From Zancudomyces culisetae HAW-14-8 (taxonomy: Eukaryota > Fungi > Kickxellomycota): a stretch of 64,000 nt of DNA. Where the stretch lies: the NCBI GenBank assembly GCA_052426225.1, contig JBNJNM010000010.1:1420059-1484058 (forward strand). The letters run 5' to 3'. The notes below the pieces were generated by a model that made no database searches, had not been told where the DNA came from, and saw only the letters and a program-made list of their open reading frames with translations. Made by a program: the position numbers and the translations under genes. Below, in pieces: positions 33,601 to 57,999 of the stretch; the first letter of the stretch is position 1, and every line of letters begins with the position of its first letter.

Positions 33601-33702
33601 AAAAAAAAAGTTAAAAGCGCAGACTCGGTACCTCAAAATCCCGTTTTCCGGTTCTTTCAGTTAATAGAAAGGTTTCCTAAAGTGAAAAACAATACAAATA
33701 AA

Positions 33703-36030: not shown

Positions 36031-37390
36031 CTTTCGCGTACCCTTATACTCTGAAAATGAGTTTTTAATCTGATATCAATAGTAATATTTTCTGTTTTTG
36101 TATTTCGCTCTTTATATTACCAAATATAAACCCAATAAACTAAGTGTTATTTATACCATTAAAAATCTGGAAACTACAGAAATATAAACCATTCCTAAGT
36201 ATGGTTGTATAATTTCGATGAGATGGGTCATTAGTGTTTTTACTCTAATGGAACTAGTTTGAACATTATGTTACTTTGACTACTCGTTCTTAAATCTTGA
36301 TTTGAATGACGTGTTAATGCATCTTAGTTGGGGTGAATGAAGCCTTGTCCCAGCCTTCCGGATATTTAACTCTAAGCATGGAAATAAATACCCACAACAA
36401 CCATAACATATTCCTGAATACTAGCTACCAATTTGCGAAAATGGGGGTTGTATATAGTATATAAAAATAAGTAGAATGTCAGACAACTTTGAGGTAACGC
36501 TCGATGGGCATGAAATTCTTTAAGGTATGGAGGGAGATTGGGAATTTGAATTATAAAGGATTTTTTACTAAATTTGCTGTTAAATATATATAGGTAAACC
36601 AGTTATCTAATTATAGAATGTGAGAGATAAAACAGTAAAAAGTTAATACTGGCACATAATATTAACCTCAGAACAATCGAATTATAATGATACTTTAAAA
36701 ACTATAGATTAATAAAGTTTTTACTAATAGGTAAATTAGGGAGGAAAAATATTTATGCTTAATTACAAATTAAAGGTTTAGAATATTTAGTAAAGGTTCA
36801 TTTAAACATACATTCTTAAACAAAAAGAAAAAAATCTAAGATACAATTCAAACGACTTTTAATGCAAAGAGTTACAGTATTGGGAACAGACGCCTAAGAA
36901 AGGTTTGTAAGTTTATAACTATATAATAAGTATCAGTCACAAAAGTAATATATATTCGAATTAAAAACGAATGAAGATAGGAATTGGTAGGGTAATATTT
37001 GAATATTATTGACTTGCTTATATTTGGTAAGATTACTACAATTGAAGTAGTTATGTTGGAACAGCACTGATGTCTCAATTATATCAGGTCAGGATCACCT
37101 ATTATTTTCGTTTATCCAGACCTTTTATAATCGATTTAAAAATATTATACGCTATTAAATTATGATAAACTAAGAACCACAAGTAAAACCTATGCATATA
37201 GAACAAGTGCCATAATATTATATTCAATTAAGAATGACTGTTTTTTTCTATAACTCATTTCCTACTTACTTTTATATTAAGTTGGTCAATCTAATGTCCT
37301 ACTTTCCAAATAATAATTTCCTATTGTAATAATTGTAGATATTATAATTTATCTGATATATTTTTTCAGCTAATGTGATGGCTGAGTTTT

Positions 37391-37751
37391 GTATAGCATT
37401 GGGATGTCAGTTATACTCAGGTCGCGGATCACTTTACTGGTTCTGATTACCGTATTTCGAATGTTTTTAATATCTTTTATTATTGTTATATTATTATTAT
37501 AACACTAAGTAAACTATATCAGTATCAAGTGCTATTTGCTATTAATAAGAGTTAAAGCCGTATATGCAAAGTATTTTCTGTTAAGAAAGGCCAAAGATGC
37601 TATTTTCGTTGTCCACTCTCGTATTTTCACTTTGTTATTCACTTTACTATCTTAGATCGTTTGTGCTATATATTCCGCTTGCTCTCATTGGTAGTTTAAT
37701 CTGCTAAGGAATCGCAATTGATTCGCTAGTTAAAAGTATGTAGCCGTTATA
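37391..37751 (+). repeat. Outer repeat, left main copy (inverted relative to 53243-53608); degenerate tandem copy at ~37020-37330
   Basis: For example gttatactcaggtcgcggatcact vs revcomp gttatactcaggtctcggatcact, and cactttactatcttagatcgttt...cgcttgctctcattggtagtt shared with the right copy. Confidence 0.85.
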
Positions 37752-37868
37752 CTGCACTATATTAGTTTCGTTATGGTTTCATTGGATGATTTATTAGCCC
37801 CTGAAACGCACTTGATTCGCTCGCAAAAAAATAAATCTGATCATCTGTAGTTAAAAATTAAAAGATAT

Positions 37869-37942
37869 TGCTCTGTACAGGGATCGAACCTGTGACCTTG
37901 GCGTTATTAGCACCACGCTCTAACCAGCTGAGCTAACAGAGC
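37869..37942 (-). tRNA. tRNA-Ile (anticodon AAT)
   Basis: GCTCTGT acceptor stem, D-arm TAGCTCAGCTGGTTAGAGC, anticodon loop CT-AAT-AA in a TGGTG/CGCCA stem, T-loop GGTTCGATCC. Confidence 0.95.
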
Positions 37943-37950
37943 TGTTGTTG

Positions 37951-38157
37951 TGTTGTATAATTACATGTTTAACGTCCTACTGAGTAATATAATTACCCAG
38001 TATTATACAGGACGGGACTTTTATTATTATATATTAGGTCTATAATTATTGTGGGAGAAAAAGACAATTTATTAATTAATTCAAAACTAGACTATTTAAT
38101 GCATAAAATAATACTGATTAAATTAACCAATAAAATACAAGGAAATACAGGTATATA
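37951..38157 (+). repeat. Inner inverted repeat, left arm (~207 bp)
   Basis: Reverse complement of 41048-41253, with about 7 substitutions and 1 indel by eye. Confidence 0.92.
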
Positions 38158-41047
38158 ATTCCACTATATAACAGTTGTATTAGATTCAATTAATTATGAA
38201 TTCTAACTGGTTCTACTAGAGGGGTGGTATCACTAGACTGGGTTTAACCCTTTTCACTAGTTACCACTTTCTAGTCATACATATAAATGGAACCGGAACA
38301 TTTATATGGGTCAAAATTTGACAATTTATTTAAGATTCAAAATAATAATTTCTTAAATACTAAATTTTACTAGAAAAACTAATAAAATTACTAACTATAA
38401 AATTAACCAATAGTATGCAAACATTCTATTTTGCATACAACAGTTGTGTTATATTTTTTATGTACTATCTGATCAGTACGTTTGAGTAGCCTGCTGTTTA
38501 ATTCAGCTACTTCTGGTTCCGGTTGTGTAGCTAGTATCTTAACCGTGTATGCTTGTTTATGTTTTAATTATTATATTTATACTTAGATACTTATACTATT
38601 AATCTTGATTTGTTTATTTACGATAGTGTTATTAGGTAATGAGAGTAAAACTAATAGTTATTGATTATGTAAAAAAAGTTAGATTCAAAAAACTAATTAT
38701 ATCTGTTGTTTTTTCTCTGCACCTTTGTGCCATTTTTTTTGATATTAAATACTAAATAATTAAAAATAAAAATAAACTATTGATAGGTGTTCGATTGGAT
38801 AAAAAAAAACCTTTCGGAAAAAAATCCAACACGAACATTTCGCTATATGACAGTTGTGTCGTGAATTTAAATCATTTCAATTTATATTTTTTTCCAATGG
38901 GTTTTTAATAAATTGCAAAGATGGTTAAATTAAATTCACGTAACATCCTTGTAAATCTGAGAATCACACTGTCATAGATGAGTCATGGGAATCATCTATA
39001 AATGATTTACAACATCTTTTCCCATTCAACAAGGGGAAACCCCCTGTTTCAATAATATTATTATAATTCATATTTCACATGTTTAAAACAGTTATAACTT
39101 TATAATTAAATTTATTATAGTAGTAGTTCGTTAGACCCAAAAAATTATATAAGGGCAAATAATTTCTATCTAGTTTTCGATATGACTTTAGCAAATAAAA
39201 ATATAAAACTATAATATTCACACGACAGTGTTGTCGTATTAGTTTTTATATTATATGTATGGGCACTTTTTCCCACTGGGTTTTTCCCATACATTTGTTT
39301 AATTTTTAGTATTAATATCATTTAATTTTATTAACGCATTTATATGTTTCAAAATAAATCTGTGTAATTTATCATGCGGATAAATTACACCAAACCACGT
39401 GTGTTAACACGGGGTAACGATGCTGTTTTGAGTGAACTGTTAACATGATAAGATATGTAGGGGTAGAAAAGATAATCAACGCATCAATTAATAAAACATG
39501 TTTGAACAACAGAAGAACATGTTAGTGATTTCAAAACAATGTTGACATACAGAAAAACTATATAAATCCAACTTTTCTTCACTTTTTTAAAGGAAGCATC
39601 GAACTAATATTTAACTATCTGATTACTTTAATATATAATAAAACTTAATAAATAAATAATCACTAGTATACAAATAACCTAAATATTACAGTGTGTTGTA
39701 ATTAAGATTGCAGAAATTATCTGAGAGATTTTCTGCAACTAAACCTACATAAAGTTCTGCTAATAGAGGGGGATTGTTACTGGAATTAGTTTTACTTTAT
39801 TTAACCAGTCAACCCTACCTTTATAGCTTTTATTTAATTTAGTTTTATGTATTTATTACTTCAATAAATGCGATAAAACTGGGTACAATTACGCCCAACT
39901 CCTAAAATTTGGTGTGCAAAACAATTAATTTTGGTCCAAAAATTAGACTCTGATACCTTTCTGATACCCTTTGAAAATTGTGTTACGCTTCACTACCTAT
40001 GTATTTTTTTGGTTTTAGGTAGGTTTTTGCTCAAATCACAAATTTCAATTTTATAGAGTAAAATCAAGTATTTTAGAGCAAATTTGTATTTTATTTATGA
40101 ATAACTTTTAAAAATAAAAAGATAAAACCACCAAACTTGTGGTGGGGTTACTAGTAATATACTAGTACCTGACTAGCTATTTTATTAGAACTTTATATAA
40201 TAGAAACTTAAAATAAAAAAATTAAAACTGAATATTTCTCCGACATTTGGGTGATAATTTCACCCTAGTAATCCCAGATTACTAGCTCGAACACCCGAGA
40301 TAACGGTGGTTATTCGGTGTTTGAGAAGCTGTATGCTGTTCATCCAATAGTTTAGCTTGGATGGAACTAAGCATACAACAGTGTTTGTCAGATACTAACG
40401 TTTTTATGCAAGTATCTCTTATATTTTATACTACTATGCTAAATATAAAACTATGTTATTCTATTTTTAAATAATACTATGTTCTATTTCAGACCTAAGT
40501 TGTATATCTTTTTATTCCTAAATTAACTATTTATTGTGTAACTTTTATAAAAAACTAACTAAAAAACTCTTATATAAGATCTACTAAAAAATTATATCAA
40601 AAAACGAAATGTTATTAGAAAAAATCACTAGGATAAAAAAACTAATGCATTTCGGATTCGTAACCAGTTACGAATCGATTGTCAATTTGCTATATGACAA
40701 TTTTGTCTAAAATTAGTAGCATCTTATTGTATATGCACTTTTTCCCAATTGGTTTTTCCTCATACAACGTTTATTAGTTTATTATTAGTCTATTTATAGT
40801 ATTTAAACAATCAGAGACATACACCTACTGATTATTTAGTTAAGAATTGCAACAATATCATAAGGACATGGTTGCAATTGTCTTTCATAGCAGCTAATAG
40901 CTACACCACGTTGTAAACAACCAACGTGGAAAGTTAATCCTAGTACATATTTCTACCTATGAGTATAAAAATCATATCAGAGAATCTAAATAAAAAATCA
41001 TCAGGTAGTTTAATAAAAACACACTAAAATTTATTTTATAGTAGAAA

Positions 41048-41253
41048 TATATACCTGTATTTTCTTGTATTTTATTGGTTAATTTAATTAGTAATATTTT
41101 ATGCATTAAATAGTCTAGTTTTGATTAATTAATAAATTGTCTTTTTCTCCCAAAATAATTATAAACCTAATATATAATAACAAAAGTCCCGTCCTGTATA
41201 ATACTGGGTAATTATATTACTCAGTAGGACGTTAAACATGTATTTATACAACA
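41048..41253 (-). repeat. Inner inverted repeat, right arm (~206 bp)
   Basis: tatatacctgtatt...gtcccgtcctgtataatactgggtaattatattactcagtaggacgttaaacatg is the reverse complement of the left arm. Confidence 0.92.
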
Positions 41254-43574
41254 TATTTAATTGTATGTTGCCATGTTTAAGGTCCCATTTAGTGTTTTTT
41301 ACACCAAATAACACACGGGACGGGTCATTTTACTTACCTTTTATCTATATGCTGCGAATAATATATAGAAAATTATGATTTTGAAAAAGAGGACATTTAT
41401 TTAGTTTACCAAACTTTTCAATTTTATACAATAAAATCTACAAAAAATCTAACTAAAAATTACTAAACACAACTAACCAATGGATATGTTTCGCCTAGTG
41501 TAGGCATACAACAGTCGTAAATTAGAGTTTATTAAGTATAATACATACAGAATTTAGGCAGCGGTTTGATAATTGATACGAGAATCATTGGACGAGTTCA
41601 GACAACAGTTGTCATTTCAGTATCAATTTTTACATAGTTTATATTTACACCTTTTATTTATTTTCTTTATAAATACGACGACAAGGAATTCATTGAATCG
41701 TGTCGGAATAATATCTTTATTCTATATCCTTTATTTATAATTTTATGCTAAATTAAGGTTTAATATTACCAAAATTAATGCTTAGAAAAGTCCTGGACCA
41801 ATTAATAACCAGTAATAAAAACTAGTTTTAGTGTATAAAGTCTTGTACTGTACTTCACTTAATTGAGTTAATATAATGTATTATTACTCGACTATTTTTT
41901 TTAGGAATTTCAATTTATATAAATATTTATAGTATTTTTCATTTATACGTTTATTGTAGTAATAACATTCTGTTCTTTACATTTCCATTGATATTAAAAT
42001 TTGCAAGATAGTAGATTATTTAATTTATCATTTTTTTACTATTTTTACTCAATAAAAATTAGGATATTAACTCCATTTTCCAAATTAAGAAGTTAAACAC
42101 TAACTACTTACTAACTTAAAATACATTATATTTTACAGATCCTATAATTATTAGATTTGAATTTATTGTATATTTCTTTTATATTTTAATTTTTCTCATA
42201 ATTATGGATATATCATAGGCCGTTTAATTTGAATATAATATAGATATTTTTTATTCATATAGATTTCTATTAATATAATGAGATAAAATTACATTAGAAA
42301 TTATTTATGAATTAACTTGTGTTTGTTTAGACAATACCAATAATAATGATCTAACTATTTGTAAAAAAACATATTGTATAAATTTTACAACTAATAAAAT
42401 AATATCATCATAAAAAATGTGATTACTAAACTCTACAGTTATTAGGAAAGATTAATTTATATTTTGCTAATTTGTAACTTTTGAATTTTAACCAAATCTT
42501 ACTGTATCTGCTGCCATTGTAAAATCACAAGAACAGGTTATACACCTGTTATTATGCTATTAAAGTTTAGCCAATTTATATTTGTGGAGCTTTGTACACA
42601 TCTTATTACCATAAACCACTTAAACGAAGATCAAAATAACAATATTTATACTGAAATTTGCTTACGGATAAACCAATTGTATACAGTAGCCATATCATGG
42701 CTACAACATTTTTTTATAAAATTGTATTTATAAGTATATGTATTATCCATTAAGATTGTTTAGTATTATTTAGTCATTTTTTATCGTTAAATAATGGTAT
42801 AAAAGCTATAATCTGCTAAAAACTAAAGCGTCACAACAGAATAGATCACATGATTTTTTAATTTCATTCAGCTACTCTGTATTAGCATAAAAACTAACCA
42901 AATTAATATGTTGGAGCGACTTGGGAAACATCCCATAGCTGCAATATAAACTCAACCACCCCTTGAAATACATGCAAAACATCATTGCTTATAAAAATAA
43001 AAATGACCAGTCTTCTGCGGATTAGGGTTTGGCAATAAGAAGATATTTTCATTCGCCTATTATTTTGATTTAGATCTAAACTCAAAAGTTTTCCAGTTAC
43101 TATTTCTATATTCATAAAAATGTATACTGTGTTATTACTGTTTGATTACGCTATCACATTTGTAATTGCAATCAATACCATTGGAGATTCGTTATACAAC
43201 TGAATAGATTAATAAGCAAATAATCGTAGTTTATCAATTTCTGATTATATTCTTGCCAGGTTTTGCGGTAGAAAAGAAAAAAATGCAAATGATCTAAGTG
43301 GAATGGGATATACCAAATCAAATAGATCTATTACCATTTTTTTTTTTGCATTTAGTACTAAAAAAAACTATTTAAACGCCAATTTATTTCAAACAGAAAG
43401 TTGTAATTAGTATAAATATTACTTTTTTTTAAGATTTTATACTCTGTTTTTAATTACTGGTACAATAAAATATCATATAATATAAAGCAAAGACACAATT
43501 CTAAACCCTAAATCGACTATTGAAGATTGAAAAACAATATTCTGATATAAAAATACTAAGTTTAAACACAAATC

Positions 43575-44537
43575 ATGACTTCAAAATATTTATACAAGGG
43601 CGAAACCGGAATAAACTTCCCAAATGTAAAGTTTATTGTAACAGGGCAATATAAAAATCTACAATTGAATAATGACAAATTTAGTTTAAATGATGAACAT
43701 ACATATAACATAACACTATTTTACTTGGAAGAAACTGTGCCTGAATCATACCCTGATTCTAGTGCTTATTTCAAATATTATTGTAAATATCTATCAAATG
43801 TAAATAATAAATTATCATTATCACATGATAAGAAAAATGCGATATATATCGAGGGGTCAACTTGTAATGATTTATTGCAAGACGATTCGAGTGATATGTT
43901 GGTGAGTAGAGAAGAAAAATATCATCAAATATTCAATATAAGACATGGTGACCTGTATATGGATATGAATTTAAACTTTACCCCCGACAAAGATAGCGCA
44001 GTTAGTTTACAGATATATGCTGAATCAAACTTCACTCATCAAATGAAAGATAACCAATCAGTACCGGCAAAATTTGATGATAAGTATATCACGGCTAACG
44101 GCGTAAATATGTTAAACGACAGCGTGTACTTTATTTTACCGAAATTGGACGCAGAAACCTCTCTTGATTCTTATTTTTTAGAATCCGAATATTCAGATAT
44201 TACTGGCCATAGGGGACGTAAAGATTTTTTAGTTAGCGAAAAATTATATGCTGAAGGAGTTTACTTGAAATTTGAAATGATAAATGGTATATATTATTTA
44301 TTAATTAATGGGTATTATCTAGGCACTACAGCGGATAAGGAAATGCTTGTTTTATACTCAAATGTTAATAAAAATAACATAAAATTGATACTCACAGGTA
44401 TTAAAAGTATGTATTATATAATGGATTATGACGAAGAATATTTCTATGAATATTTTAATGGGAAATATTGCGCTTCTGAATTTTTCAATACAAAAAATAA
44501 CAACAGTGCATCCATATTCCAGTTTATTTCCATTTGA
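43575..44537 (+). CDS. Orphan intronless 320-aa protein, predicted tandem beta-trefoil-like; no signal peptide
   Basis: Long ATG-initiated ORF in very AT-rich DNA where random ORFs are short. Six ~40-50 aa pseudo-repeats of type [FY]xxxxG/KxYLx...LxL...AxxF. Confidence 0.7.
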   Translation: MTSKYLYKGETGINFPNVKFIVTGQYKNLQLNNDKFSLNDEHTYNITLFYLEETVPESYPDSSAYFKYYCKYLSNVNNKLSLSHDKKNAIYIEGSTCNDLLQDDSSDMLVSREEKYHQIFNIRHGDLYMDMNLNFTPDKDSAVSLQIYAESNFTHQMKDNQSVPAKFDDKYITANGVNMLNDSVYFILPKLDAETSLDSYFLESEYSDITGHRGRKDFLVSEKLYAEGVYLKFEMINGIYYLLINGYYLGTTADKEMLVLYSNVNKNNIKLILTGIKSMYYIMDYDEEYFYEYFNGKYCASEFFNTKNNNSASIFQFISI

Positions 44538-45019
44538 AATAGCTTTAATAGTGCTTTTTTACATTTATTTTAATTTCTAATAACCTTTCTGCGTTTGGTG
44601 TGTTTAACTCTGTAATACTTTCTTACTCAATATACAACTTTGTTCTGAAAAAGCGGTCATTTCTCACTTTGTCATTTACGAATACATTTTTCTTTCTCTA
44701 CTTTTACTTTACTATATAATTTTCTATTAAATACGATTAGAATAAATCATCATTTCTATTTTATAGTCATTGATTCACTGTCTTTTTTTAATTTTACTTG
44801 TATTTACTTTAATATCATTTTTAACATATAACTCTGTCGGATCGGAATTGTTAAACTTTTAAGCTAATCAAATCTGCGATTACACATCTCTTTGCATAAA
44901 ATTCTAATAAAACCGATACCTATAATGCTGATTATTTTGTATTCAATTGATATTCTTTATTATTAAAATAAAATACAAGATATATGAAAGTTTAGAATCA
45001 CTATCATATATATAAGTAG

Positions 45020-45800
45020 CTGATGTTACCGATAAACCATTATAATGGGAAGCCTATTGATGTTAGCTATAAGATTAGATCTGGTACTACTGCTAATAAA
45101 GACAAAGGATACCTTAAGTTTGTTTACTAATTTATTATAACTATCTTTTTTACTAACATAATTTTTTAGCTATCTTCTACTATCTGCTTACCTGGCTATC
45201 TAATGAATTACTACGACTAGTTATTAAAAAATTAAATGCCAATACAAATGGCAATGGTATGATTTTTATTTTTGAACTCAAAGCTTTATTTTTTCTAAAT
45301 ACATTATATAATTTATATTATTAGCCTATTCACAACCTTTATAGCTATTAAAGATATTTCCTTACCTAATAACTATTATCACGACTTTAAATAAAGTTAG
45401 TTTGAGAAAAGTGAAAATTTGAAAATATACAAGTATTTCAGTTGACACCTTCGCTTAATTAACATCATTCATTCATTTTTATATACTTGTGATTTTGTTA
45501 TACTTACAATAGCTTTTATATACGTACTAACTTCTCTTTTAGCCAACACTCACACTATTTATTTAACATACCAACTAAAGAATATATTGAAAAACTAACT
45601 ATCTAGTAATGTCTCTAGCTGAAGTTTATTGTTTTTTTGAATTAGACGATAACATATTTTATTTAATGGTTAATTTAGATAATTATGATATTATCATACA
45701 TAATAATAATCAAAGAATTTACCAACACTAATGTTTTTTGATTGATTAAAATGAGCGCAATTGAGTACATTAGATTGTTAAAATAGTAGTATAAAGTAGT
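45020..45800 (+). pseudogene. Possible decayed multi-exon gene
   Basis: Intron-like units 45118-45169 (GTTTGT...TACTAAC...TAG), ~45257-45324 (GTATGA...TAG) and a third ending TACTAACTTCTCTTTTAG at ~45542. Spliced frames hit stops. Confidence 0.3.
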
Positions 45801-46505
45801 AAGTCTATAATTTTAGGTTAAAAACCGTCTGCAATCACTTTAAATTGTTAAGGTATTAAATTAACAAATTCATGTAATTATACGTTAAAAAACTAATAGC
45901 TATTATTAGCGATGAGTATTTGAATAAGTTTCGATTACTATAACATATTTTCTGGGTGCTAATCGTATTTGAGCATGTATTAATTTTGTGAAGTTTCATT
46001 TCAATCAGATACAAAAGTTGTGTCTTGTATAAACATTTCCGTCATAAATCCGCAAAATATATCAAAGTTTAAATTATATTTTTAAAGTATTGAAGGTAAA
46101 TAATGTATAATACCAGCTAAACATTGATACATACAATTGTATTGATTAAATCTTGGAAACTAATGGCTATAATGATTTTAATTAGCTAATCAATAATACA
46201 ATGATTCATAAATACAGTAAATAGAATTAGTTATAAAAGTATTATTTCCAAACTTTACATGCTGAATGATTAGCGAACCAATAAGTACGGTAAATAGATT
46301 ATAATATTGCAAAGTATTGTATACGAATATTAAACCAAATATATATTCTTTGCTATGATTACATTTGAACGTGATAAAGTACAGATTCAGTCAGTTTTAC
46401 TCAGGCCATAGGTTATAATTTAGTTCTATTTCCGTATATAACTTTTGATACTAAAAAACAGTTTTTATGCTATAAAGATTATAAATATTGATAATTGCAA
46501 ACTAC

Positions 46506-47251
46506 TGTCGGGTGAGGTTGGGTGCAGCCTCATCCTTTGTCGGGTTTTTCAATTGTAAAAAAACATGATCCATAATATCAGCAAATGGGTCACGTGATTC
46601 TTTGGGATCCACTTCCATAGAAGTGGCTCCCGAACGGTCACTATCAGATGAGTATCTGCCCTCATCTTTTTCTGACTGGATCCATCTGGGTCTAAATTTA
46701 CTCATGAAACCTGACATTCTTTATGTGAGATTTTAATAGCTTCTAATATGTCAAAACTTAATATTCATTAACTAGCCGTAGCACTATTCCTAATAAACTT
46801 CTTAATTATCCTAAACCTGGATTTTAATTCTGAATTGATATTTATTTATCTTACTTTCCTTTTTCTTATTAAAACTATCAAAAGAGCTGAGGAATCCTCA
46901 TCGAGTCTTCCTTCGCTTATATATATACTATTTTATTTAACCTAATAAAAGCTAATTCAAATAACCTATGTTTCTATTGTATATACTGAGTTGTATCGTG
47001 TGTTATCGTTGTTACTTCGTTTTCGTTTTCATATTGTTCCTATATTTGAATGTTGATTTCCTATAATCTTTTTAATTGTATTTTTCGTTTTATAATTTTT
47101 TTTGTGTTATTATATATATTTTCAAAAAAAATAATTATCATAGTATTTTCAGTGATCAACTTTTAATAGAATGTTAGTTGATTGTTTATGTAGTAAATTA
47201 AATAATTGTTAGAAAATGTGAATTCCGATCGACATCGGAATACACACGACA
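46506..47251 (-). repeat. 3' LTR
   Basis: Same length as, and apparently identical to, 51801-52546. Confidence 0.95.
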
Positions 47252-47263
47252 TCCCCCTCCTTA
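47252..47263 (-). other. Polypurine tract
   Basis: Minus strand AAGGAGGGGGA directly abuts the 3' LTR start TGTCGTG. Confidence 0.9.
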
Positions 47264-47281
47264 AGCTTGAATCGTCCCGAT

Positions 47282-50200
47282 TCATTGACTTGCTATACTT
47301 CGTATAGTCGATCTTGATCGTGCCTTTCGTATTTTTGTAATTTCCTTTCTTGGTTGCATGTATTTAACGAGCCTATCCACATGTACTGTGTCCAAATTGC
47401 CATCGCTGTCTGATATTTCAAAAATTCCGTGTTTTAAAATTTTTGTAATTCTGTATGGGCCAGTATTGCGCTCGTCAAAAATGCCTTGAATATCCTTATT
47501 GCTTCTAAGTACTTTTTCGCCTAATACAAATTCTCTTTGTCTTATGTTTTTGTTGTACCTATTTTCGTCCTGTAATTTAATTTTATTTCCGATCTCGAAC
47601 GCTCGCTTTCTATATCCTTGTAGTTTGTTAATAAATACTCCGTACTGGGTTATATTATTTACTAGATTATTAATATTCATCCTATGTTCCCATATCGCTG
47701 GTGTGAGTAACCTTTGTCCGTATAATATTTCCGCTGGGCTTCTACCTAGTGATCTGTGGTAACTCGTGCGCATTGATAACAACGCACGCCAAATGTATAT
47801 GTCCCAGGTTTTTGGTTTGCTTAGAACATATTTCCGAAGTAGTTGTTTAAGTGTTTGGATAGTTCTCTCTGTTTGTCCATTCGCTTGAGGTCTATAGGCT
47901 ACTATATGATTATGATTAATTCCCAAGAATTGGTTAAATAAACTACACTTTTCATTTGTAAAGTGGGTACCTCTGTCTGTAATAAGTTTTTCGGGTACGC
48001 CATATTTAGATACTATTTCTTCGGCAATAACTGCACATGTGGTATTTCCATCTGCTTTGACTGTAGGAATGGCTATAGGCCATTTCGTAAAGTAATCTAC
48101 GGCAACGTAGATGTACTTATTTCCAGCCTCAGTTACTTCCAAAGGGCCTGCCACGTCGATGCCCCAAATTTGAAATGGACGTGTAGCTTTAATTGAGTGT
48201 AAAGGCTCACTCTTTCTTTCTATATAGTTGCTCCTTTGGCAACGCTCACAGTTCCTAATAATTTTTTTAATTAATTTTCCAGTGTTCGGTGCGTAGTAGT
48301 TATCTTTCAGATAACTACGTGTACCTTCTAGGCCTCGGTGCTGCTCTTGGTGGATTCTTTTAATTAACTCTTCTATCCCACTTGGTTTGGGAAACTCCTT
48401 CCATTTATCTCCATCTTTTTTAAATATTATATCGTTATTTAGTGAATACTTATCTTTCACTTTATTTTCTTGCCTCGTTATTTTGCCTTTTAATTTTTCA
48501 TACCTCTCATCACTAATGTATAATACTTCTTCTTCCTGTATTGCTATCTTTTCATCCCAAGGAAAACGGCTCAAATGATCAGCTGGATTTTTCAAACCGT
48601 CTCGATGTATGACTTCGAAGTCATAATGCCGTAGCTTGGTTACCCAGCGTCCTAGCCTTCCTTTTCCAGGTGTATTTTTAAACAAGTTTACCAACGCTTG
48701 ATGGTCAGTAATAACTGTAAACTTCTTACCATATAGAAAATAGTGGAATTGGTCGATTGCCCATACAATCGCCAATCCCTCCAAATGCGTTATAGCATAA
48801 TTTTGTTCCGCTGGTGCTAGAGTGCGTGATGCATATGCAATAACCTGATCCTTTCCCTCTTTACCTTGTGCTAGTATGGCACCTAATCCTACTGTACTCG
48901 CATCTGTTATCAAGGTAAACGGCTGATCCCATTGTGGATACCTTAATATTGGTTCGTTTATTAGTTTTTCTTTTAATACTTCAAACGCTTCTGAACATTT
49001 TATATCCCAATTGAACTTAACGTCCTTCTTTAATAGTCCGGATATAGGAGCTGCTATTGTGCTAAAACCTTGGATAAACTTTCGATAATAGCCGACTGTT
49101 CCCAAGAAACTTCTGATTCCATGTTTATCTGTTGGTGGTTGTAACTTCTGTACTGCGTTGATCTTGTCTGGGTCCGGTTTCAATCCATCAGCAGATATTA
49201 CATGGCCTAGATATTTCAACTCCTTGTACCCTAACCTTGACTTTTTGCTGTTTAGTTTGATTTTTGCTTCATGTAAACACTTTAATACTTCCTGTATATG
49301 GTCAATATGCTCTTCCCAAGTGTGACTATAGATGATGATATCATCAATATACACCATCACAAACTTCCATAATAACTGCTCCAAAACCTTTTCCATCATA
49401 CGCTGAAACAATGCTGGCGCATTGGTGAGACCGAATGGAAGTACTGTAAATTGGTAGAGTCCTAAGCCTGGCCCTGGAGAAAATGCAGTGATTTCCTGGC
49501 TCGCCTCATCAAGTGGAACCTGCCAGTATCCACTTAGCGCGTCCAAAGATGTAAAGTAAACTGCTCCTTTTAATCGACTCAAGATTTCGTCCATATGGGG
49601 CAATGGATAAGAATCTGTTTTAGTTATTTGGTTTATTTTTCGAAAATCAACGCATATACGTTTTCCTCCATCTTTCTTATTCACCACCACCATTGGTGAG
49701 GAATACGGTGACTTTGATTTAATGATGACTTTTTGCTCTTCCATCTCCTTTAGCTGCGTCAATACCTCTTTCTGTAACTGATGTGCCAGTTTGTATGGCT
49801 TTTGGCGAATTGGGTGTGGTTCTAGCAATTCAATCTTTTCTGGCTCTACGTCCGCGGCATATAGTTCTTCTAACTTTTCGGCGAACATGTCTTGATTTTC
49901 ATTTACTATCAGCTCCAATTTATTTCTCTGACTGCTGTTTAATTTTTCATTTATCATGGTATCTTTTTCCGTTTCAGTTAGCATTACATTTGATTCAGAT
50001 TTCTTGCTATAGACCATTTGAATGGGTACGTAGTGTTCTTGATTATTTATTTTTACACTCATACTTGGAGGTGACATTTTAATATTTGTAGATAGCTGTG
50101 TCATTAGGTTCAATCCTAAAAGCAATAAATCCTTCCTTCCTTGATTGATAATCCTAAAATCTGTTGTGCACTTAAATGTATTAAATTCTAATACAACTGC

Positions 50201-52012
50201 TTTTGCTTCTTCTGTAATGTATTTCTCTCCTGATACACTAACAATATTTCTATTTCCTTGTTCTAAGGGTCCAATTTTTAATTCTTCCGCTAACTGTTTA
50301 CTCATTACGTTAACAGCTGCACCACTATCGCACTGAAATTTTACTTCATGTCCGTTTATTTTAACTGGCCCTACCATCGCTATAGCATGGTCCTCTTGAT
50401 TATTTTTTTCTTGGTTTAAATTTTTTGATTTTTTTGAATTTTCAATTTTTTTGGTTTCGATATCTTTATCTAATATAGTAACTAAATTAACTCCAGTATA
50501 TGGAGGTTGCTTATGAGTTTTTTTTGGAGCGGGTGAAGCGGTAGTCATTCTGACTTCAGGTATTTGTCTCGGTAATCTGCAACTAGTTGCATAATGCCCT
50601 CTCTGTTTACAGTTCCAGCAAACTATATCTCTGTTAATTTTAGCATTAAAATTTTTCTGGTGACCTTGGAATCTTCTTGGCTTGCTTTGGTATGAACTTT
50701 CTTCATTATCCTTCAACTCTGGGATTCCTAATTCCTTTTTGTAGTTTTTCACAAAGTTGCTAGGTTCTCTAGCAACACGATTTGGTCTTAAGGTATTCAA
50801 TTGCTTCTCTGCGGGTCTTCGCATTGCATTTATTTTCAACTGTTCGTTTTCTCTTGTACTCAGCATATCAATGATATCTGATAGTTCAAAATCTTTTTTC
50901 ATAGATATAAACTGGCGGTCCATTGAATTCAACATATAGTATGCCTTATTTTTCATTTCTCTCTTGCTTCTGATATCTAATATTTCAAATAGAGTCATCA
51001 GTTCTCCAAAACTTTCCACTGTATCCTTTGCGTACAAGTTGTAATTATTCAATCTCATTTCAGCTTTGTATACCCGTTCACTGTTATTGAAATATAATAA
51101 AAAGTGTTTGCAAAATTTTGCATAATCAGTATGTATTCTTCTTAAATAGTTAAATTTCTTTTTAGCTCCGGGTCCTATAAAAATCTCCATAACATTTAAT
51201 AAATCCTCTGTGGTTACCCCTGTAGCGTATGCTTCAATGTGTCGATTAAACTGATTCAAAAATCTTTGTGGTGTGTCATCTGAATCGTTATTAAATTCCA
51301 CTGGTTTTGGAAACATAATTTTTGATCGCTCCTCTATTCTCTCCTCTGTTAGTCCTGAGTTTATACGATCAATTCTTCTTTGTAACTCTTCTTTATCAGA
51401 TGATACTCCTAATAAGGTTGCTCCCAAGAAAGGGTTATCATTTGATACTGGAGGTAATTTTTGGCTGGTGCTAGCTTCGCTGTGGATGTTATGATCATCT
51501 ACATCCTCTTCACCTTGAAGAACTTCAAAACTTTCCTTCGGGGTTTGAAAAGTTTCTCTAGCCACAAAATTTGGTATTACTCCTCCAAACATTGAATTCC
51601 ACGACTTGATACTGCAGCTGCTACTTGTAGGGCTGATCTTCTGCACTTGCTCTTGGCAGCCTTTCTCCTCATATGTTTCGGTCTTCTGATATTGCATGAA
51701 CTTTGATACTGGGTTTAAAGTTCTCAGAGTGGGCGCACTCTGTTCTCTCGGTTCCATCTTTGGATGATCAACAAAATTGACCATCCTGTCGCTGACGCCA
51801 TGTCGGGTGAGGTTGGGTGCAGCCTCATCCTTTGTCGGGTTTTTCAATTGTAAAAAAACATGATCCATAATATCAGCAAATGGGTCACGTGATTCTTTGG
51901 GATCCACTTCCATAGAAGTGGCTCCCGAACGGTCACTATCAGATGAGTATCTGCCCTCATCTTTTTCTGACTGGATCCATCTGGGTCTAAATTTACTCAT
52001 GAAACCTGACAT
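47282..52012 (-). CDS. Gag-Pol polyprotein, single uninterrupted ORF (1576 aa)
   Basis: Zn knuckle CWNCKQRGHYATSC; protease CDSGA; RT LPFGLTNAP/YIDD; RNase H TDAS...EGLAIV...TDH; integrase HHCC, GIDVAGP, TDRG, NGQTER; GPY motif. Confidence 0.96.
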   Translation of the reverse strand: MSGFMSKFRPRWIQSEKDEGRYSSDSDRSGATSMEVDPKESRDPFADIMDHVFLQLKNPTKDEAAPNLTRHGVSDRMVNFVDHPKMEPREQSAPTLRTLNPVSKFMQYQKTETYEEKGCQEQVQKISPTSSSCSIKSWNSMFGGVIPNFVARETFQTPKESFEVLQGEEDVDDHNIHSEASTSQKLPPVSNDNPFLGATLLGVSSDKEELQRRIDRINSGLTEERIEERSKIMFPKPVEFNNDSDDTPQRFLNQFNRHIEAYATGVTTEDLLNVMEIFIGPGAKKKFNYLRRIHTDYAKFCKHFLLYFNNSERVYKAEMRLNNYNLYAKDTVESFGELMTLFEILDIRSKREMKNKAYYMLNSMDRQFISMKKDFELSDIIDMLSTRENEQLKINAMRRPAEKQLNTLRPNRVAREPSNFVKNYKKELGIPELKDNEESSYQSKPRRFQGHQKNFNAKINRDIVCWNCKQRGHYATSCRLPRQIPEVRMTTASPAPKKTHKQPPYTGVNLVTILDKDIETKKIENSKKSKNLNQEKNNQEDHAIAMVGPVKINGHEVKFQCDSGAAVNVMSKQLAEELKIGPLEQGNRNIVSVSGEKYITEEAKAVVLEFNTFKCTTDFRIINQGRKDLLLLGLNLMTQLSTNIKMSPPSMSVKINNQEHYVPIQMVYSKKSESNVMLTETEKDTMINEKLNSSQRNKLELIVNENQDMFAEKLEELYAADVEPEKIELLEPHPIRQKPYKLAHQLQKEVLTQLKEMEEQKVIIKSKSPYSSPMVVVNKKDGGKRICVDFRKINQITKTDSYPLPHMDEILSRLKGAVYFTSLDALSGYWQVPLDEASQEITAFSPGPGLGLYQFTVLPFGLTNAPALFQRMMEKVLEQLLWKFVMVYIDDIIIYSHTWEEHIDHIQEVLKCLHEAKIKLNSKKSRLGYKELKYLGHVISADGLKPDPDKINAVQKLQPPTDKHGIRSFLGTVGYYRKFIQGFSTIAAPISGLLKKDVKFNWDIKCSEAFEVLKEKLINEPILRYPQWDQPFTLITDASTVGLGAILAQGKEGKDQVIAYASRTLAPAEQNYAITHLEGLAIVWAIDQFHYFLYGKKFTVITDHQALVNLFKNTPGKGRLGRWVTKLRHYDFEVIHRDGLKNPADHLSRFPWDEKIAIQEEEVLYISDERYEKLKGKITRQENKVKDKYSLNNDIIFKKDGDKWKEFPKPSGIEELIKRIHQEQHRGLEGTRSYLKDNYYAPNTGKLIKKIIRNCERCQRSNYIERKSEPLHSIKATRPFQIWGIDVAGPLEVTEAGNKYIYVAVDYFTKWPIAIPTVKADGNTTCAVIAEEIVSKYGVPEKLITDRGTHFTNEKCSLFNQFLGINHNHIVAYRPQANGQTERTIQTLKQLLRKYVLSKPKTWDIYIWRALLSMRTSYHRSLGRSPAEILYGQRLLTPAIWEHRMNINNLVNNITQYGVFINKLQGYRKRAFEIGNKIKLQDENRYNKNIRQREFVLGEKVLRSNKDIQGIFDERNTGPYRITKILKHGIFEISDSDGNLDTVHVDRLVKYMQPRKEITKIRKARSRSTIRSIASQ
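51783..51800 (-). other. Primer binding site, probably for a tRNA-Ser
   Basis: TGGCGTCAGCGACAGGAT directly follows the 5' LTR and is complementary to ...ATCCTGTCGCTGACG-CCA. The G discriminator and GACG end are typical of tRNA-Ser. Confidence 0.75.
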
Positions 52013-52546
52013 TCTTTATGTGAGATTTTAATAGCTTCTAATATGTCAAAACTTAATATTCATTAACTAGCCGTAGCACTATTCCTAATAAACTTCTTAA
52101 TTATCCTAAACCTGGATTTTAATTCTGAATTGATATTTATTTATCTTACTTTCCTTTTTCTTATTAAAACTATCAAAAGAGCTGAGGAATCCTCATCGAG
52201 TCTTCCTTCGCTTATATATATACTATTTTATTTAACCTAATAAAAGCTAATTCAAATAACCTATGTTTCTATTGTATATACTGAGTTGTATCGTGTGTTA
52301 TCGTTGTTACTTCGTTTTCGTTTTCATATTGTTCCTATATTTGAATGTTGATTTCCTATAATCTTTTTAATTGTATTTTTCGTTTTATAATTTTTTTTGT
52401 GTTATTATATATATTTTCAAAAAAAATAATTATCATAGTATTTTCAGTGATCAACTTTTAATAGAATGTTAGTTGATTGTTTATGTAGTAAATTAAATAA
52501 TTGTTAGAAAATGTGAATTCCGATCGACATCGGAATACACACGACA
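51801..52546 (-). repeat. 5' LTR (contains the gag start codon at 52012)
   Basis: Direct repeat of 46506-47251. Confidence 0.95.
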
Positions 52547-53242
52547 CTACATAATTATCACAAAATATTAGTAAATTAATTATTATACGTAAATTAAGAA
52601 ATAAAATACTAATTATCCACTGAGTGTTATCAATATAATTCACTATTGACTGCAGTTCAGAATTAACAAATTAGCATGCTAAGTATTACAGATTATTAAA
52701 GTCTCTCGTTGGTAGTCATAATCTGCTATGAATCGAGTTTATTTGTAGCAAACAGGGTGTAACCGTTAATTACACTATCAATTTAAAATTCGATGACAAA
52801 TATATGATCTGTAAAAAAATTCAATAAAAAATACTCATGTTATATAATAATTTATAACCTTTTTGTTAGATAATCAATTATAATTCAGAATAGATTAACG
52901 CTACCAATCAAAGGAAACGGGAGCTATAATTAATATAATCTTTGTTAGTATAATGAATGGCAGAGCGATAAGTACAAAAAAATAATTATTGATATTTTAA
53001 CGATATACTTCACATTACGTATTTTAATGAATTGTGAGTAGTTACAATACTTATTAATTATCGTGTCCACTTTGCGTTTAGAACAAATAATAAAAATAAT
53101 AAAAGTAGTTTTAATAATCAAGAAAAATATACAGAACTAGTATAGAAATGCAAGCCACGAAAAGATGACAAATCCAGTGCTAAGCTATGCTAAAAAAATT
53201 ACCTCTGAACAAAATATCAATAATTATATGAACATCTTGTAT

Positions 53243-53608
53243 TATAACCAATACATTCTTTTTGTAGTGAATCAATTCGATTCCTTAGTAGAATATAACT
53301 ACCAATGAGAGCAAGCGTGATAAATAGTAAAAACGATCTAAGATAGTAAAGTGAATAACAAAGCGAATATAACGAGAGCGGACAACGAAAACAGTTTTTT
53401 TTTCTTTTCTTAACAGTTAATACTTTACATATACGTCTTTAATTCTTATTAATAGCAAATAGCACTTGATATTGATATAGTTTACTTGTTGTTTTATTAT
53501 TATTATAACAATAATAAAAGATATTAAAACATTCCTATTACAGCAATGAGAACCATTGAAGTGATCCGAGACCTGAGTATAACCGACATTACCAGTGTTA
53601 AACTATAC
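53243..53608 (-). repeat. Outer repeat, right main copy; degenerate tandem copy at ~52890-53235
   Basis: Inverted match to 37391-37751. Tandem copy shown by ccagtgctaagctatgctaaaaaaattacctctgaacaaaatatcaat (~53174) vs ccagtgttaaactatactaaaaaattaccattgaacaaaatatcaat (~53592), and ctaccaatcaaaggaaacggga vs ctaccaatgagagcaagcgtga. Confidence 0.85.
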
Positions 53609-53679
53609 TAAAAAATTACCATTGAACAAAATATCAATTAACTTTTAAATATCTAAAATAAACAAAAAATGCAAAATAG

Positions 53680-53753
53680 TGATTTCTGCCGGACTCGAAC
53701 CGGCGACCGTCTGTGTGTTAGACAGACGTGATAACCATCTACACCAAGAAATC
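53680..53753 (-). tRNA. tRNA-Val (anticodon AAC)
   Basis: GATTTCT acceptor stem, TGGTGTAGATGGTTATCAC, anticodon loop CT-AAC-AC in a TCTGT/ACAGA stem, GGTTCGAGTCC. Confidence 0.95.
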
Positions 53754-56700
53754 ACATTTTTTAAACAACTTTTATTATTATATATTATTAACCCTTTAGG
53801 TATTAGTTTTTCACCATTAGGTTTTCTAGTTTATAAAGAATTGAATACAAAGTGAATAAAAAACTATCATTATGACAAAAAACTAAACGGAGAATAAATT
53901 TATTAATCTGATATTGTACAACTGAGTAGAGCTATTAAGTAGAAATCAACTACATTGTCGACGCATATATAATCCGCACGACAATTTTTTGTTTATTTAT
54001 TTTACAACTTTAATATTTTACTACATATTTTATACAATTTAGGGATTTACCATAACAATCGTTGAACAATCTACAGATTCGCTTCGTCTATTGTTTATTA
54101 TATTGTTTAATTTAGTATAATAAGCTAGTTTTTATTATTTTTTTTACTTTTTATAGCGAAAGGGAAAATGGTATATAAAAACACCAATTTCCAAAATAAG
54201 GAAAAGTTGTACTTTTCCGACCTTCTAATCCACAAAAAATAAAATATTTTATAATACTAAAAATAACTAAGAATTTATGTAGTTGATTTTTTAAGTATGA
54301 CAAGCTTTGTCGTGTAGTGAAAATACTTGAGGTCCTACTTGGTAACTTTCGCTCAAAGTACTATGCGGGATGGGCTATCTTCTATTAACTATAACATATT
54401 ATAATATATTTTCTAACTTAAAAGTATCTTTATTTACAACAATCATAGTTATCAACTTGATAAGATCACTTTAAATATTTAACTTGTAGTTGATTTAGTA
54501 TATTCACTTAGCTTAATTATAGAGCATCAGTATTTTATCACTTAAACTTTACTCCTAATGAACATTAAATAATTCTCATATTTTTTGAATCAATCTGGCG
54601 TTTGATTCAATTTTTTTTATCGATAATATAACAAACAAAGTATATCGATATATTTACTTAATATGAATATGATATTTTGCCTTTAGTATGATCCAAAATT
54701 CACTACTATTGCTCACAATTTTTACTATAAATTTTTTCTATAAATTTTTTCTTTTATTACAATATTAACATTATATTTAAATACATATAATGACGATTTT
54801 GTTGTTATAATTAATAATATGTAATTATCCTTTAAAATCTCTTTAAAAAATAATCAACGATTCTAGTAAATAAAAATCTAATTAAAATATTCATTTTGAC
54901 ACACATTTCTCACGTTTTGTTTGTTCATCGTTTCTATTGCATAAATACAAAACTATGAAAATTTGTCAAGCAAAAGCCTATCAATCATAATTTAAATCTA
55001 ATGTTCATTGTACTTCTAATAACATATCCCCAAACTCCAGTTAGATCATGTGTTCCGATATCCTCAGCTCTCCTTTGTCCCACTTTAGTATGCTGTCAAT
55101 CTCGGGTAAAATATATATAATGTGATATTAGGGTTTCAGGTTATGTTATTGCCAGATTGTAGTGTTCTTATCGACTTTTCATAACATATACTTCTTTATT
55201 AATTCTAAAATACGTTGTAAACGTTTTTCCATTTGTAAACTAATAATAATCTCGATTGTCATTTATTCTCTTGTTATATTTAGTACACATCAAACTTGCG
55301 TTATGAAAAACATAAATTTAATAATTGGGAATCAAATAAATACTGACTAAATTGTTTACGAGATACATGGTTTAATTGGGAGAATTTCTACAATATATTA
55401 TTAATATTTTAGATAGAATTATCTGGTATTAGCTTGGTTATAGCTAATCAAATCTACGTTATAATTAATATTTATTAAAAATACGTACCTAGTAGATATT
55501 TGGCAATGTCTATTCCTCTATACACTTGTAAATTAGATTAGAAATAGTATAAGTCGTTTACATAAACTGAGTGCACTATTTAATAGTTGTGACTTTTCTA
55601 ATATTTACCAAATACTAACCTAATAATATTATCGTCATATTCGTAATCTGGTATTATAACATATTCATGCTTGCAAAAAAGTAAAAGTTAGTGGTTATAG
55701 CAATTATATTGTACTGAGAACATTTTACTATATTTTAGAATTTTATATAATTAAATAGTGCGTTATCTGCCATATTGCTATAATTATAATTCTTGATGTT
55801 TTAATCCACAAATTAAATTACAACTCTATTTAAATAGCCACAAGAATATAATTTAGGACCTGTGCACATTTTAAACAGCACATTGCAATTTATTGAATTA
55901 AAAGGTTAAGGTTGAAAGTTAATAATTGAATTTATATCATATCAACTGTAGATATGTAAAGTCTAGACTATCAGAAATTCTCAATTAATATCAGAACTCT
56001 ATAACATTAATAATTATTTATAGAATATTTAGTTTAAATTGCATTTTATTAATTTTTCTATATACATAGTACTCATAGTTTGTATAATCTCCAATACTCC
56101 GATTGATACGGCAGTCTTGTGAGTAATATAGGTTTGAATTTAATTAACTAGTAATTTTTGTCTATTTGATGATTTTCTATAAACACTTTATAACCAAGCA
56201 TTGTGATTATAGGCAAATGCCAATTACCTAGTCACACTAACTAGAGTATGATGTTATTAACTTTAAGGTATAAAAGTTTTACTGGAAACAATAGTTGCTA
56301 TGTATTTTTTTGTATGTTCATTCATTGTTGATTAGCACCAGTAAAAAAATTGCTAATTAATACCTGAATTTTCAGATATAACCAAAAATGTAGTAAATCA
56401 TACGTTTTTAGACACTATAGCGTCTAGAATGTATAGTTGTTACATTTGTATTTTTCCATAGGGTTGATTCGAGCCAAACCAAATGGCAATGCTAAATACA
56501 GAAAATAGACTTTCAAGAGTCTAGTTGCGATTATCCCACCAATTCCCTGAATATTTTAGCCGCAAGTTGCTAGTGATAATCTCGATTAGGTTGGGCATGC
56601 TGTACTAGTAAATGTTTAAAGATTCTAAATCTGCAAACTCAGCCAATCTAGACTTAATCAGATAAAAAGCGTGGTTTTCTATTAGGCGCTTCCAGCATAG

Positions 56701-57372
56701 TAATGTATATTTGAGTAGTAATAACATTGTGGAAACTAACTGTAATTGTTGTAAGCTAGTATGATCGAAGATTTGAAACAATTTTAATCTTACAAATATA
56801 GAGGTTCATATGAACCTCTATACTAGTTCCTCATAAATAACTATTTAACAATACAGTAAACATAGACCAAGGAAACAATCAAAAATAGTACTACATGCGA
56901 ATGGCCCGACACACAAAATAGTGATTTGACCTAAACTCAACTCAGTTCAGCTTCAATAGACTAGTCTTATTATATTCTTTTATTTATGGTATACAGTTTG
57001 TGAAAATATTTCAAAAAAGTAGGGTGGAATACGATATATACACTTGTATTAAGCGAAGTTACAGAAGCGGTCAAAGCTGGGATCACAAAAATAGTAGTAA
57101 GTTTTGGTAGATAGGGGGAATAAGAGTTGGAGGTGTCGAGTAATAAAAAAACCAGATCCACAAAATTGGATAACTAGACTAGAATTAGAAATTATTTGTG
57201 GTTTAGATAAAATAAAAATCAAGTAAAAATATTGACTGGGTCAGTTCCAAAAGTATTACACTAAGCGTGATTAATACCTTTGGATTTAACTATATGAAAG
57301 ACATGGTTTAGGTTGATGTATTTATCCGAAATCAAAATTTTCTTTCATTTGCTTTGACGACGTTTGAAATTC

Positions 57373-57999
57373 TTATGGGCCTCCTCCACTTCCGCCATCA
57401 CCTCCTCCACTTCCACCATCACCTCCTCCACTTCCACCATCACTTCCACCATCACCTCCACCATCACTTCCACCATCACTTCCACCATCACCTCCTCCAT
57501 CACTTCCGCCATCACCTCCTCCACTTCCACCATCACCTCCTCCACTTCCACCATCACTTCCACCATCACCTCCACCATCACTTCCACCATCACCTCCTCC
57601 ATCACTTCCGCCATCACCTCCTCCACTTCCACCATCACCTCCACCATCACCTCCTCCACCTGTAGTAGTGGTAGTAGTGCTAGTAGTAGTGGTAGTGGTA
57701 GTAGGTTGTGGATTCTCCGTTGTGGTATCTATAGATGTGTACATTTTATATCCAGCTCCACTTCCGTTTGAGTAATTTGCATTGTCATTGTATTGTGACT
57801 GCGAATGCACACCATATCCATTATTTCCGACATCGCGCATTTTGTAATGGTTGTATCCAGCACTACCACGTCTTTTGAGTTGCGCACCAAAGTTGTGAGC
57901 TCCATTTATTTCACCTGGGATGTGCATGCTATTTGCGCAAGCAATATAGAACAATGTGGTTATAACCAACTTTCCGATTGTCAATTTTAATACTGCCAT
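57373..57999 (-). CDS. Secreted glycine-rich repeat protein
   Basis: Signal-peptide-like N-terminus (MAVLKLTIGKLVITTLFYIACANS), dibasic KRR, poly-Thr, then ~95 aa of GGGD/GGSD/GGS repeats. Confidence 0.8.
   Translation of the reverse strand: MAVLKLTIGKLVITTLFYIACANSMHIPGEINGAHNFGAQLKRRGSAGYNHYKMRDVGNNGYGVHSQSQYNDNANYSNGSGAGYKMYTSIDTTTENPQPTTTTTTTSTTTTTTGGGGDGGGDGGSGGGDGGSDGGGDGGSDGGGDGGSDGGSGGGDGGSGGGDGGSDGGGDGGSDGGSDGGGDGGSDGGSGGGDGGSGGGDGGSGGGP

Follow-up and report, generated by a model that had tools for sequence, protein, structure and literature searches.

The AT-rich, gene-poor island of about 21 kb found in the genome of the Harpellales mosquito-gut fungus Zancudomyces culisetae HAW-14-8 is read here, at a probability of roughly 0.8, as an intergenic region in which two tRNA genes have acted as landing pads for position-specific Ty3/gypsy long terminal repeat (LTR) retrotransposons. 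The island lies in a stretch of 64,000 nucleotides, called the window below (C10:1420059-1484058); contig C10 has a total of 1,484,058 bp, and the end of the window is hence the end of the contig. The assembly contains 27.09 Mb in 25 contigs, one of them with 5,239,357 bp and one with 2,524,970 bp. The PacBio-HiFi genome paper on this fungus gives no centromeres, and tRNA-linked elements were not analysed in it (PMC12611240). A preliminary description, made from the letters of the window alone, had proposed either a regional centromere or a tRNA-associated sink or mobile island. The sink was the apt part of this proposal: both repeat families and the core of the island, as well as the additional insertions carried by another copy of the locus on contig C6, are tRNA-targeted LTR retrotransposon material. 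The evidence consists of the family membership of the repeats, their positions relative to tRNA genes, the insertion polymorphism between the copies and the domain content of the full-length elements.

Both the fall in GC and the scarcity of genes over ~21 kb, as first described, were borne out by binned GC and the list of open reading frames (ORFs). In 1-kb bins, GC is 0.23-0.31 over 36-47 kb and 52-57 kb, 0.33-0.39 inside a retroelement and 0.33-0.46 in the flanks; overall, the island has 0.290 and the first 36 kb of the window have 0.366. Between a transcription-factor gene on the left and position 57345, only a single ORF of at least 100 aa is present besides the retroelement ORF. The orphan ORF of the preliminary description is thus real, and it has no Pfam family. 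Sequence that can be recognised as retroelement accounts for 54% of the island. The Rfam/RNA-gene search of the island found no RNA genes beyond the two tRNAs.

[quoted passage not shown]

The two tRNA genes, the LTRs around them and the full-length retroelement of the island are the following:

37323..37756, plus strand: solo LTR of the 420-bp family (Ty3/gypsy), 112 bp past the 3' end of tRNA-Ile (nhmmer E 1.9e-127)
37774-37829: 56-bp fragment of the 420-bp family (nhmmer profile search)
37869..37942, minus strand: tRNA-Ile (AAU), anchor of module 1 (ARAGORN; Rfam RF00005, 65.7 bits)
37951..41513: stack of about ten solo LTRs of several families, beginning 8 bp upstream of tRNA-Ile
37951-38171 and 41034-41253: inverted pair of 221-bp-family LTRs, 95% identical (dispersed copies of the family)
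39694-40380: ~690-bp solo LTR in the core (match to an abundant dispersed family)
41261-41513: LTR of the 252-bp family (dispersed copies)
Junctions near 38446, 38852, 39229, 39690, 40381 and 40700: further stack units with ACA-N4/5-TGT motifs at their borders
41579..41901: old LTR-like remnant at the distal stack end, 77% identical to L027:8681-9000 (L027 is the C6 locus of a 420-bp-family element) and 72% to another C6 copy
46506..52546, minus strand: full-length Ty3/gypsy retrotransposon with 746-bp LTRs 100% identical, a CTAC 4-bp target duplication and one long uninterrupted ORF with protease, reverse transcriptase, RNase H and integrase (PR-RT-RNaseH-IN)
52857-53185, minus strand: degenerate LTR of the 420-bp family, 3' of tRNA-Val (nhmmer E 2.2e-10)
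53238-53656, minus strand: complete LTR of the 420-bp family, 3' of tRNA-Val and 22 bp from it (nhmmer E 8e-94)
53679..53753, minus strand: tRNA-Val (AAC), anchor of module 2 (ARAGORN; Rfam 62.2 bits)
53754..54440: remnants of the upstream LTR stack at tRNA-Val (dispersed fragments, 72-93% identity)

The order of downstream (3') LTRs, tRNA and upstream (5') LTR stack is seen twice in one direction. With both tRNA genes read from the minus strand, one module is repeated in tandem and no mirror is formed. From the symmetric, tRNA-bounded architecture described at first, the two tRNAs remain and the symmetry does not; the apparent symmetry is no sign of a centromere and is not a designed structure. 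Inverted outer repeats do exist (37323-37756 vs 53238-53656, about 82% identical). Their reported doubling on each side holds only in part, the left side having one copy and the 56-bp fragment and the right side one copy and the degenerate copy.

The arrangement described as a hairpin-rich core between inverted repeats consists of some ten solo LTRs stacked on the upstream side of tRNA-Ile. The inverted repeat was correctly noticed and its length, given as 207 bp, has to be changed to 221 bp; the arms are the first and the ninth units of the stack and belong to one family in opposite orientation. The pieces of the stack are 91-99% identical to dispersed copies. The core itself (38172-41033) is a mosaic of the ~690-bp LTR and four more pieces at 91-98% to dispersed copies; direct pairs of the ~690-bp LTR, 5.7-6.1 kb apart elsewhere, mark full-length elements. 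The richness of the core in hairpins was reproduced, with 9 perfect stems of at least 9 bp vs 1.1 +/- 1.1 in shuffles, i.e., about eight times the shuffle frequency. These stem-loops are located within the stacked LTR units, and it may be that a conserved hairpin has a function in these LTR families. The second hairpin-rich tract claimed for 53754-57300 was not enriched (2 stems vs 1.5 expected).

The 221-bp family has at least 41 copies at 95-100% identity. At five loci, those of tRNA-Ile, -Tyr, -Arg, -Leu and -Ser, its LTRs are found on the upstream side, at a distance of 6-9 bp from the mature 5' end of the tRNA; tRNA-Val can be added to these independent loci when the upstream LTRs are considered together. 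The 221-bp LTRs often occur in direct pairs with starts 785 bp apart, which gives ~1-kb mini-elements at four loci. Pairs of 252-bp LTRs are spaced ~734 bp start to start at C6:1398277/1399011 and C21:1075705/1076439. Such LTR-spacer-LTR elements of ~1 kb, common beside tRNAs and too short to code, appear to be non-autonomous (TRIM-like) elements that ride on the tRNA-targeting families.

An autonomous member of the upstream-targeting kind is the 336-bp-LTR element, in which LTRs, TG..CA ends and the PR-RT-RNaseH-IN order were found. The 5.25-kb element at C6:1535859-1541107 has 336-bp LTRs 99.4% identical and Ty3/gypsy domains, and it ends 8 bp upstream of tRNA-Val. This element stands beside tRNA-Val in both C6 copies of the region (the right and left arms of an inverted duplication treated below) and is missing from the C10 stretch. 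In the C6 left arm, it has an uninterrupted 1522-aa ORF with gag, PR, RT, RNase H and IN domains. The upstream side of tRNA-Val in the same arm (C6:1470398-1480557) is occupied by two 336-bp-LTR elements in tandem, which share the middle LTR; the pair is 99.98% identical, and each ORF is uninterrupted with 1522 aa.

The 420-bp family behaves differently with respect to the side of the tRNA gene. The assembly search gave at least 66 matches on 12 contigs. For each of the two families, the 420-bp and the 221-bp one, ten loci were sampled, the presence of tRNA being ignored in the choice, and a tRNA gene was found in nine of the ten loci sampled for the 420-bp family. An LTR-only profile hidden Markov model was run over the retrieved sequence and found 33 copies; for 31 of these a tRNA gene was in view. 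The family was on the 3' side of the tRNA in all these copies (31/31), loci picked for another family included. The nearest copy lies 9-202 bp past the tRNA 3' end, and extra copies are stacked outward. Both orientations occur, at least nine tRNA species are among the neighbours, and the LTR ends are TG...CA. A full-length member at C6:972038-977907 (L027:1538-7407) sits 25 bp downstream of tRNA-Asn; its coding sequence for PR, RT, RNase H and integrase is interrupted by two in-frame stops.

The young Ty3 of the preliminary description is present, as its identical LTRs, target duplication and PR-RT-RNaseH-IN domains indicate. The insertion at 46506-52546 is specific to the C10 copy; the empty site, with a single CTAC, is at C6:1542320-1542324. 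Another full-length copy of this 746-bp-LTR element was found at C9:747588-753630, together with at least 30 solo LTRs.

The following course of events is proposed. Elements of the upstream group (LTRs of 221, 252, 336 and about 690 bp) would integrate 6-9 bp upstream of the mature tRNA 5' end, which is the RNA polymerase III start site. Each new insertion would displace the older copies outward, and most copies would collapse to solo LTRs, giving the 3.6-kb core with its inverted ends; the end repeats would be two LTRs of the same family landed in opposite orientation. The 420-bp family would integrate 9-202 bp downstream of tRNA genes in either orientation and produce the outer repeats. The third Ty3/gypsy element, apparently untargeted, would be a very recent arrival between the modules. 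If Ty3 and the elements of Dictyostelium are taken as a model, the integrase of the upstream group could be tethered to the polymerase III initiation machinery, and the 420-bp family, by analogy with the Dictyostelium elements, may recognise something on the 3' side of the tRNA gene.

Copies of the locus and growth of the island

The entire 64-kb window is ~99% identical, in the reversed direction, to C6:1587421-1524346, with 99.5-99.96% identity in genes and 98.6-99.7% in non-coding DNA. C6 is 2.92 Mb in length and has telomere repeats at both ends: regular CCCTAA repeats at the left end and an irregular G-rich mix of TAGGGG, TTGGGG and TGGGG at the right end. The C10 and C6 copies are collinear including the flanking genes. 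They differ almost only at tRNA-adjacent sites, and the differences are single retroelement insertions. The C6 copy is without 37954-41260, the 3.3-kb repeat-bounded segment, and has at tRNA-Ile another stack of ~2.05 kb made of different LTR families. The distal, oldest unit of the stack is common to the copies and the proximal units are copy-specific, as would be expected if new arrivals land beside the tRNA. The old remnant at 41579-41901 is common to all three copies of the region. At a tRNA-Lys locus (C10:870 kb vs C6:2151 kb), the flanks match and the stacks differ. Insertion polymorphism between C10 and C6 was thus found at tRNA-Ile, tRNA-Val and tRNA-Lys. Since the copies differ by single elements within collinear flanks, the island grows element by element, with no movement of the unit. 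As judged from the comparison of copies, the core bounded by inverted repeats, the most centromere-like feature for the preliminary description, is a recent and dispensable accretion.

A part of the island extends beyond its right edge as a segment present three times in the assembly:

41237..61338 of the window; C6 right arm 1547576-1527008; C6 left arm 1459429-1494155, inverted to the right arm: segment in three copies (megablast 96.7-99.5%)

This triplication, along with the tRNA genes and repeats at the bounds of the island, could be taken to indicate a tRNA-anchored mobile island, moved or lost as one 21-kb unit. The triplicated segment, however, extends 4 kb beyond the island over normal genes, and its beginning is within LTR stacks, the left border lying inside those at tRNA-Phe and tRNA-Ile. 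Such borders suggest ectopic LTR recombination as the origin of the segment, which fits better than excision and integration. The copies are collinear with long ordinary gene flanks over the 64 kb that are ~99% identical on C6, the differences between them are single retroelement insertions with their own target duplications, and no island-level integrase or terminal direct repeats were found. The mobility proposed at first is therefore abandoned as extremely unlikely.

The C6 left arm is enlarged by extra elements. In its left part the C10 stretch is nearer to the left arm of C6, in its right part to the right arm, and the mosaic relationship of the three copies suggests gene conversion. The GC of the spacer between the C6 arms is 0.34-0.44, and long ORFs are present in it, one of 4230 aa. 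C10 stops 2.7 kb into this spacer, and C6:1514001-1520000 is single-copy in the assembly. No telomere repeat was found at the C10 end within the window, where the letters are coding-like.

Several anchors connect C10 with the right half of C6 in the reversed direction: the C10 start (C10:1-466) corresponds to C6:2919675-2920138 (93.5%), C10:871 kb to C6:2151.3 kb (97%) and the window to C6:1587-1524 kb (~99%). Judging by these matches, C10, with its 1.48 Mb, appears to repeat the right half of C6 in reverse and nearly identically, presumably with collinearity between the anchors. It could be a second homologue, a disomy or an arm duplication. A second copy of this kind is in keeping with the raised proportion of duplicated BUSCOs published for the assembly, 6.2% vs 1.5-1.8% (PMC12611240). 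The phosphatase gene at 10443-14030 and its copy at C6:1573381-1576974 differ in 1/1195 residues. The product of this tyrosine-phosphatase gene flanking the island is 99% identical to the Z. culisetae protein of NCBI; both copies are 10-11 residues off the latter, the older reference being another strain or a different gene model.

Low-copy DNA and chromosomal setting

The remaining features of the island and its left border are as follows:

33682..36030, plus strand: gene for a Zn2Cys6 fungal transcription factor, bounding the gene-poor stretch on the left (Pfam Zn_clus and Fungal_trans)
43575..44537, plus strand: 320-aa ORF, lineage-restricted, with no Pfam family (ORF list, Pfam)
54441..57344: low-copy AT-rich DNA, 27% GC, confined to the three copies of the region, with no retroelement similarity detected

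The 320-aa ORF is intact here and at C6:1461760-1462722 in the left arm, with 2 non-synonymous differences. The copy at C6:1544288-1545249 in the right arm has a 1-bp deletion causing a frameshift, and a paralog at C15:565242-566216 is 74% identical in nucleotides. Weak hints from a language model indicate that the product possibly has a ricin-type beta-trefoil fold. In the pseudogene-like remnant reported next to this ORF (44538-46505), ORFs do not exceed 52 aa and nothing similar to retroelement pol was found; the label is not retained. The 'Gly-rich' gene at the right border is an ORF at 57373-57999 with 208 aa and no Pfam family; a repetition with a 9-12 bp period occupies 57359-57688. Long AT-only runs are no richer in the island than in the flanks and are unusable as a genome-wide marker.

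The tRNA-genes, retroelements and AT-rich, gene-poor DNA could also form a heterochromatin island in which nested retroelements nucleate silencing and the tRNA genes near both ends serve as barriers. tRNA genes are known as barrier elements in yeasts, and this possibility can coexist with tRNA-targeted retrotransposition. Against it stand the intact ORF and the retroelement with an uninterrupted ORF inside the island. Furthermore, no chromodomain was found by Pfam in the polyproteins of the three element families examined, and the 420-bp family gave no Chromo match even at E up to 1. A heterochromatin island is thus regarded as unlikely.

Some observations weigh against the reading of the island as a product of tRNA-targeted retrotransposition. 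About 9.7 kb of low-copy island DNA has 24-28% GC vs 31-34% in other ORF-free stretches and is unaccounted for by the small element library used. In the low-copy parts, tblastn found no retroelement pol remnants, and sensitive blastn added one extra old LTR unit only; this leftover DNA would be ordinary or anciently decayed intergenic sequence. The tethering mechanism is drawn from analogy only. The counterpart of the island on C6 (1.527-1.550 Mb) lies mid-chromosome, beside a retroelement block of at least 94 kb. The C6 inverted duplication, whose arms measure about 20 and 35 kb and enclose a 33-kb spacer, is near the middle of the chromosome, and the C10 terminus is 6.7 kb past the island. 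The mid-C6 position, the inverted duplication and the C10 end are compatible with a pericentromeric setting and do not amount to one.

The mid-C6 position, the inverted duplication and the C10 end also count in favour of a regional centromere or its immediate flank, organised in the manner of S. pombe or Candida tropicalis from AT-rich retroelement and tRNA DNA and the C6 inverted duplication. The locus is near the middle of the telomere-to-telomere C6, adjoins the retroelement block (C6:1.40-1.494 Mb) and has inverted arms of 20-35 kb around the spacer, within which the contig of the second copy breaks after 2.7 kb; no centromere has been mapped in this lineage according to the literature. 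However, all architectural elements cited for a centromere are dispersed tRNA-targeted LTRs. The 221-bp inverted repeat and the core, which would have to be a conserved chromosome-specific repeat around a non-coding AT-rich centre, are missing from the ~99% identical C6 copy. The spacer of the larger duplication bears genes at a normal GC and hence provides no AT-rich core, and the island contains two presumably active tRNA genes and an intact ORF.

The number of comparable sites also speaks against a centromere. It was estimated from repeat, tRNA and reverse transcriptase coordinates and 190 kb of contiguous C6 sequence. In C6:1.40-1.59 Mb, the tRNA genes number 8 and the pol-bearing intervals at least 11; six of the former and ten of the latter are within 1.40-1.494 Mb. 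Other AT-rich tracts occur on C6, e.g., one at 1.404-1.419 Mb with a length of 15 kb. Reverse-transcriptase candidates number at least 605 in the genome; among the best 150 of them, those on C6 are scattered, with clusters at 1.70-1.75, 1.90-1.93, 2.10-2.15, 2.33, 2.73 and 2.87-2.91 Mb. tRNA genes are present on all large contigs, and the 420-bp and 221-bp families have dozens of copies on at least 12 contigs. A centromere would be expected as one such region per chromosome, whereas these families occupy dozens of loci and form several clusters on C6. Many retroelement/tRNA clusters along a chromosome were the outcome that the preliminary description itself had named as refuting its centromere, and the argument from architecture falls with them. 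A centromere or its flank at the island is accordingly considered quite improbable.

It is distinctly unlikely, too, that the middle of C6 is the centromere of that chromosome, with the island as one arm of the inverted duplication next to the retroelement/tRNA block of at least 94 kb. If it were, this would be the first centromere of Zoopagomycota, built from tRNA-targeted retroelement stacks, and C10, as a 1.4-Mb near-identical second right arm, would end at the centromere as the site where a duplication at arm level was broken off.

Relation to known systems and significance

The upstream group resembles Ty3/sigma of Saccharomyces cerevisiae, where Ty3/gypsy elements likewise lie within a few bases of the polymerase III start upstream of tRNAs, with solo LTRs and short target duplications. 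Unlike Ty3, many LTR families (221, 252, 336 and ~690 bp) are involved here at one site, in ordered stacks of up to ten units. Mini-elements of ~1 kb with the LTR-spacer-LTR structure are common, and the host belongs to Kickxellomycotina, far from yeasts.

In Dictyostelium, the LTR element Skipper-2 and the non-LTR element TRE3 insert downstream of tRNA genes, Skipper-2 at 7-136 bp (PMC5006619). The 420-bp family shares this downstream position, consistently in its 31 copies, with a distance of 9-202 bp, either orientation and stacking. All Skipper elements have a chromodomain, whereas none was detected by Pfam in the C-terminal extension of the integrase in the 420-bp family. This family is therefore Skipper-2-like in behaviour and is not filed as a Skipper-2 member; the downstream-targeting habit in this fungus most likely arose independently of Dictyostelium.

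The centromeres of S. pombe, Candida tropicalis and Komagataella share AT-rich DNA, inverted repeats and edge tRNAs with the locus, and the C6 inverted duplication flanks a unique spacer. In contrast to these centromeres, the small repeat here consists of two dispersed LTRs that the sister copy lacks, genes and a normal GC are found in the spacer of the large one, and comparable clusters are many per chromosome. Centromeres of the Cryptococcus and Debaryomyces type consist of nested LTR retrotransposons in gene-poor DNA, as is the case here. Those clusters occur once per chromosome as the largest ORF-free regions, whereas the present ones follow tRNA genes and are numerous.

Upstream tRNA targeting is also known from yeast Ty3. 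Upstream and downstream targeting in one host have been described in Dictyostelium, including DGLT-A, TRE5, Skipper-2 and TRE3 (PMC5006619). tRNA-targeted LTR retrotransposition is thus known biology in kind and unpublished for this lineage. The statistics of the family 3' of tRNA genes, the between-copy comparison that dates the stack and the large duplications are new, the latter bearing on the reading of the published assembly.

In this genome, AT-rich DNA combined with inverted repeats, tRNAs and retroelements is the usual mark of tRNA-targeted retrotransposition. These features are consequently unusable for calling centromeres in it, which removes a tempting false positive. The two ~99% identical copies of the locus serve as a natural before-and-after record, according to which turnover in the stacks outpaces divergence in the DNA around them. 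An early-diverging fungus is seen to host both upstream-targeting families and one downstream-targeting family of LTR retrotransposons.

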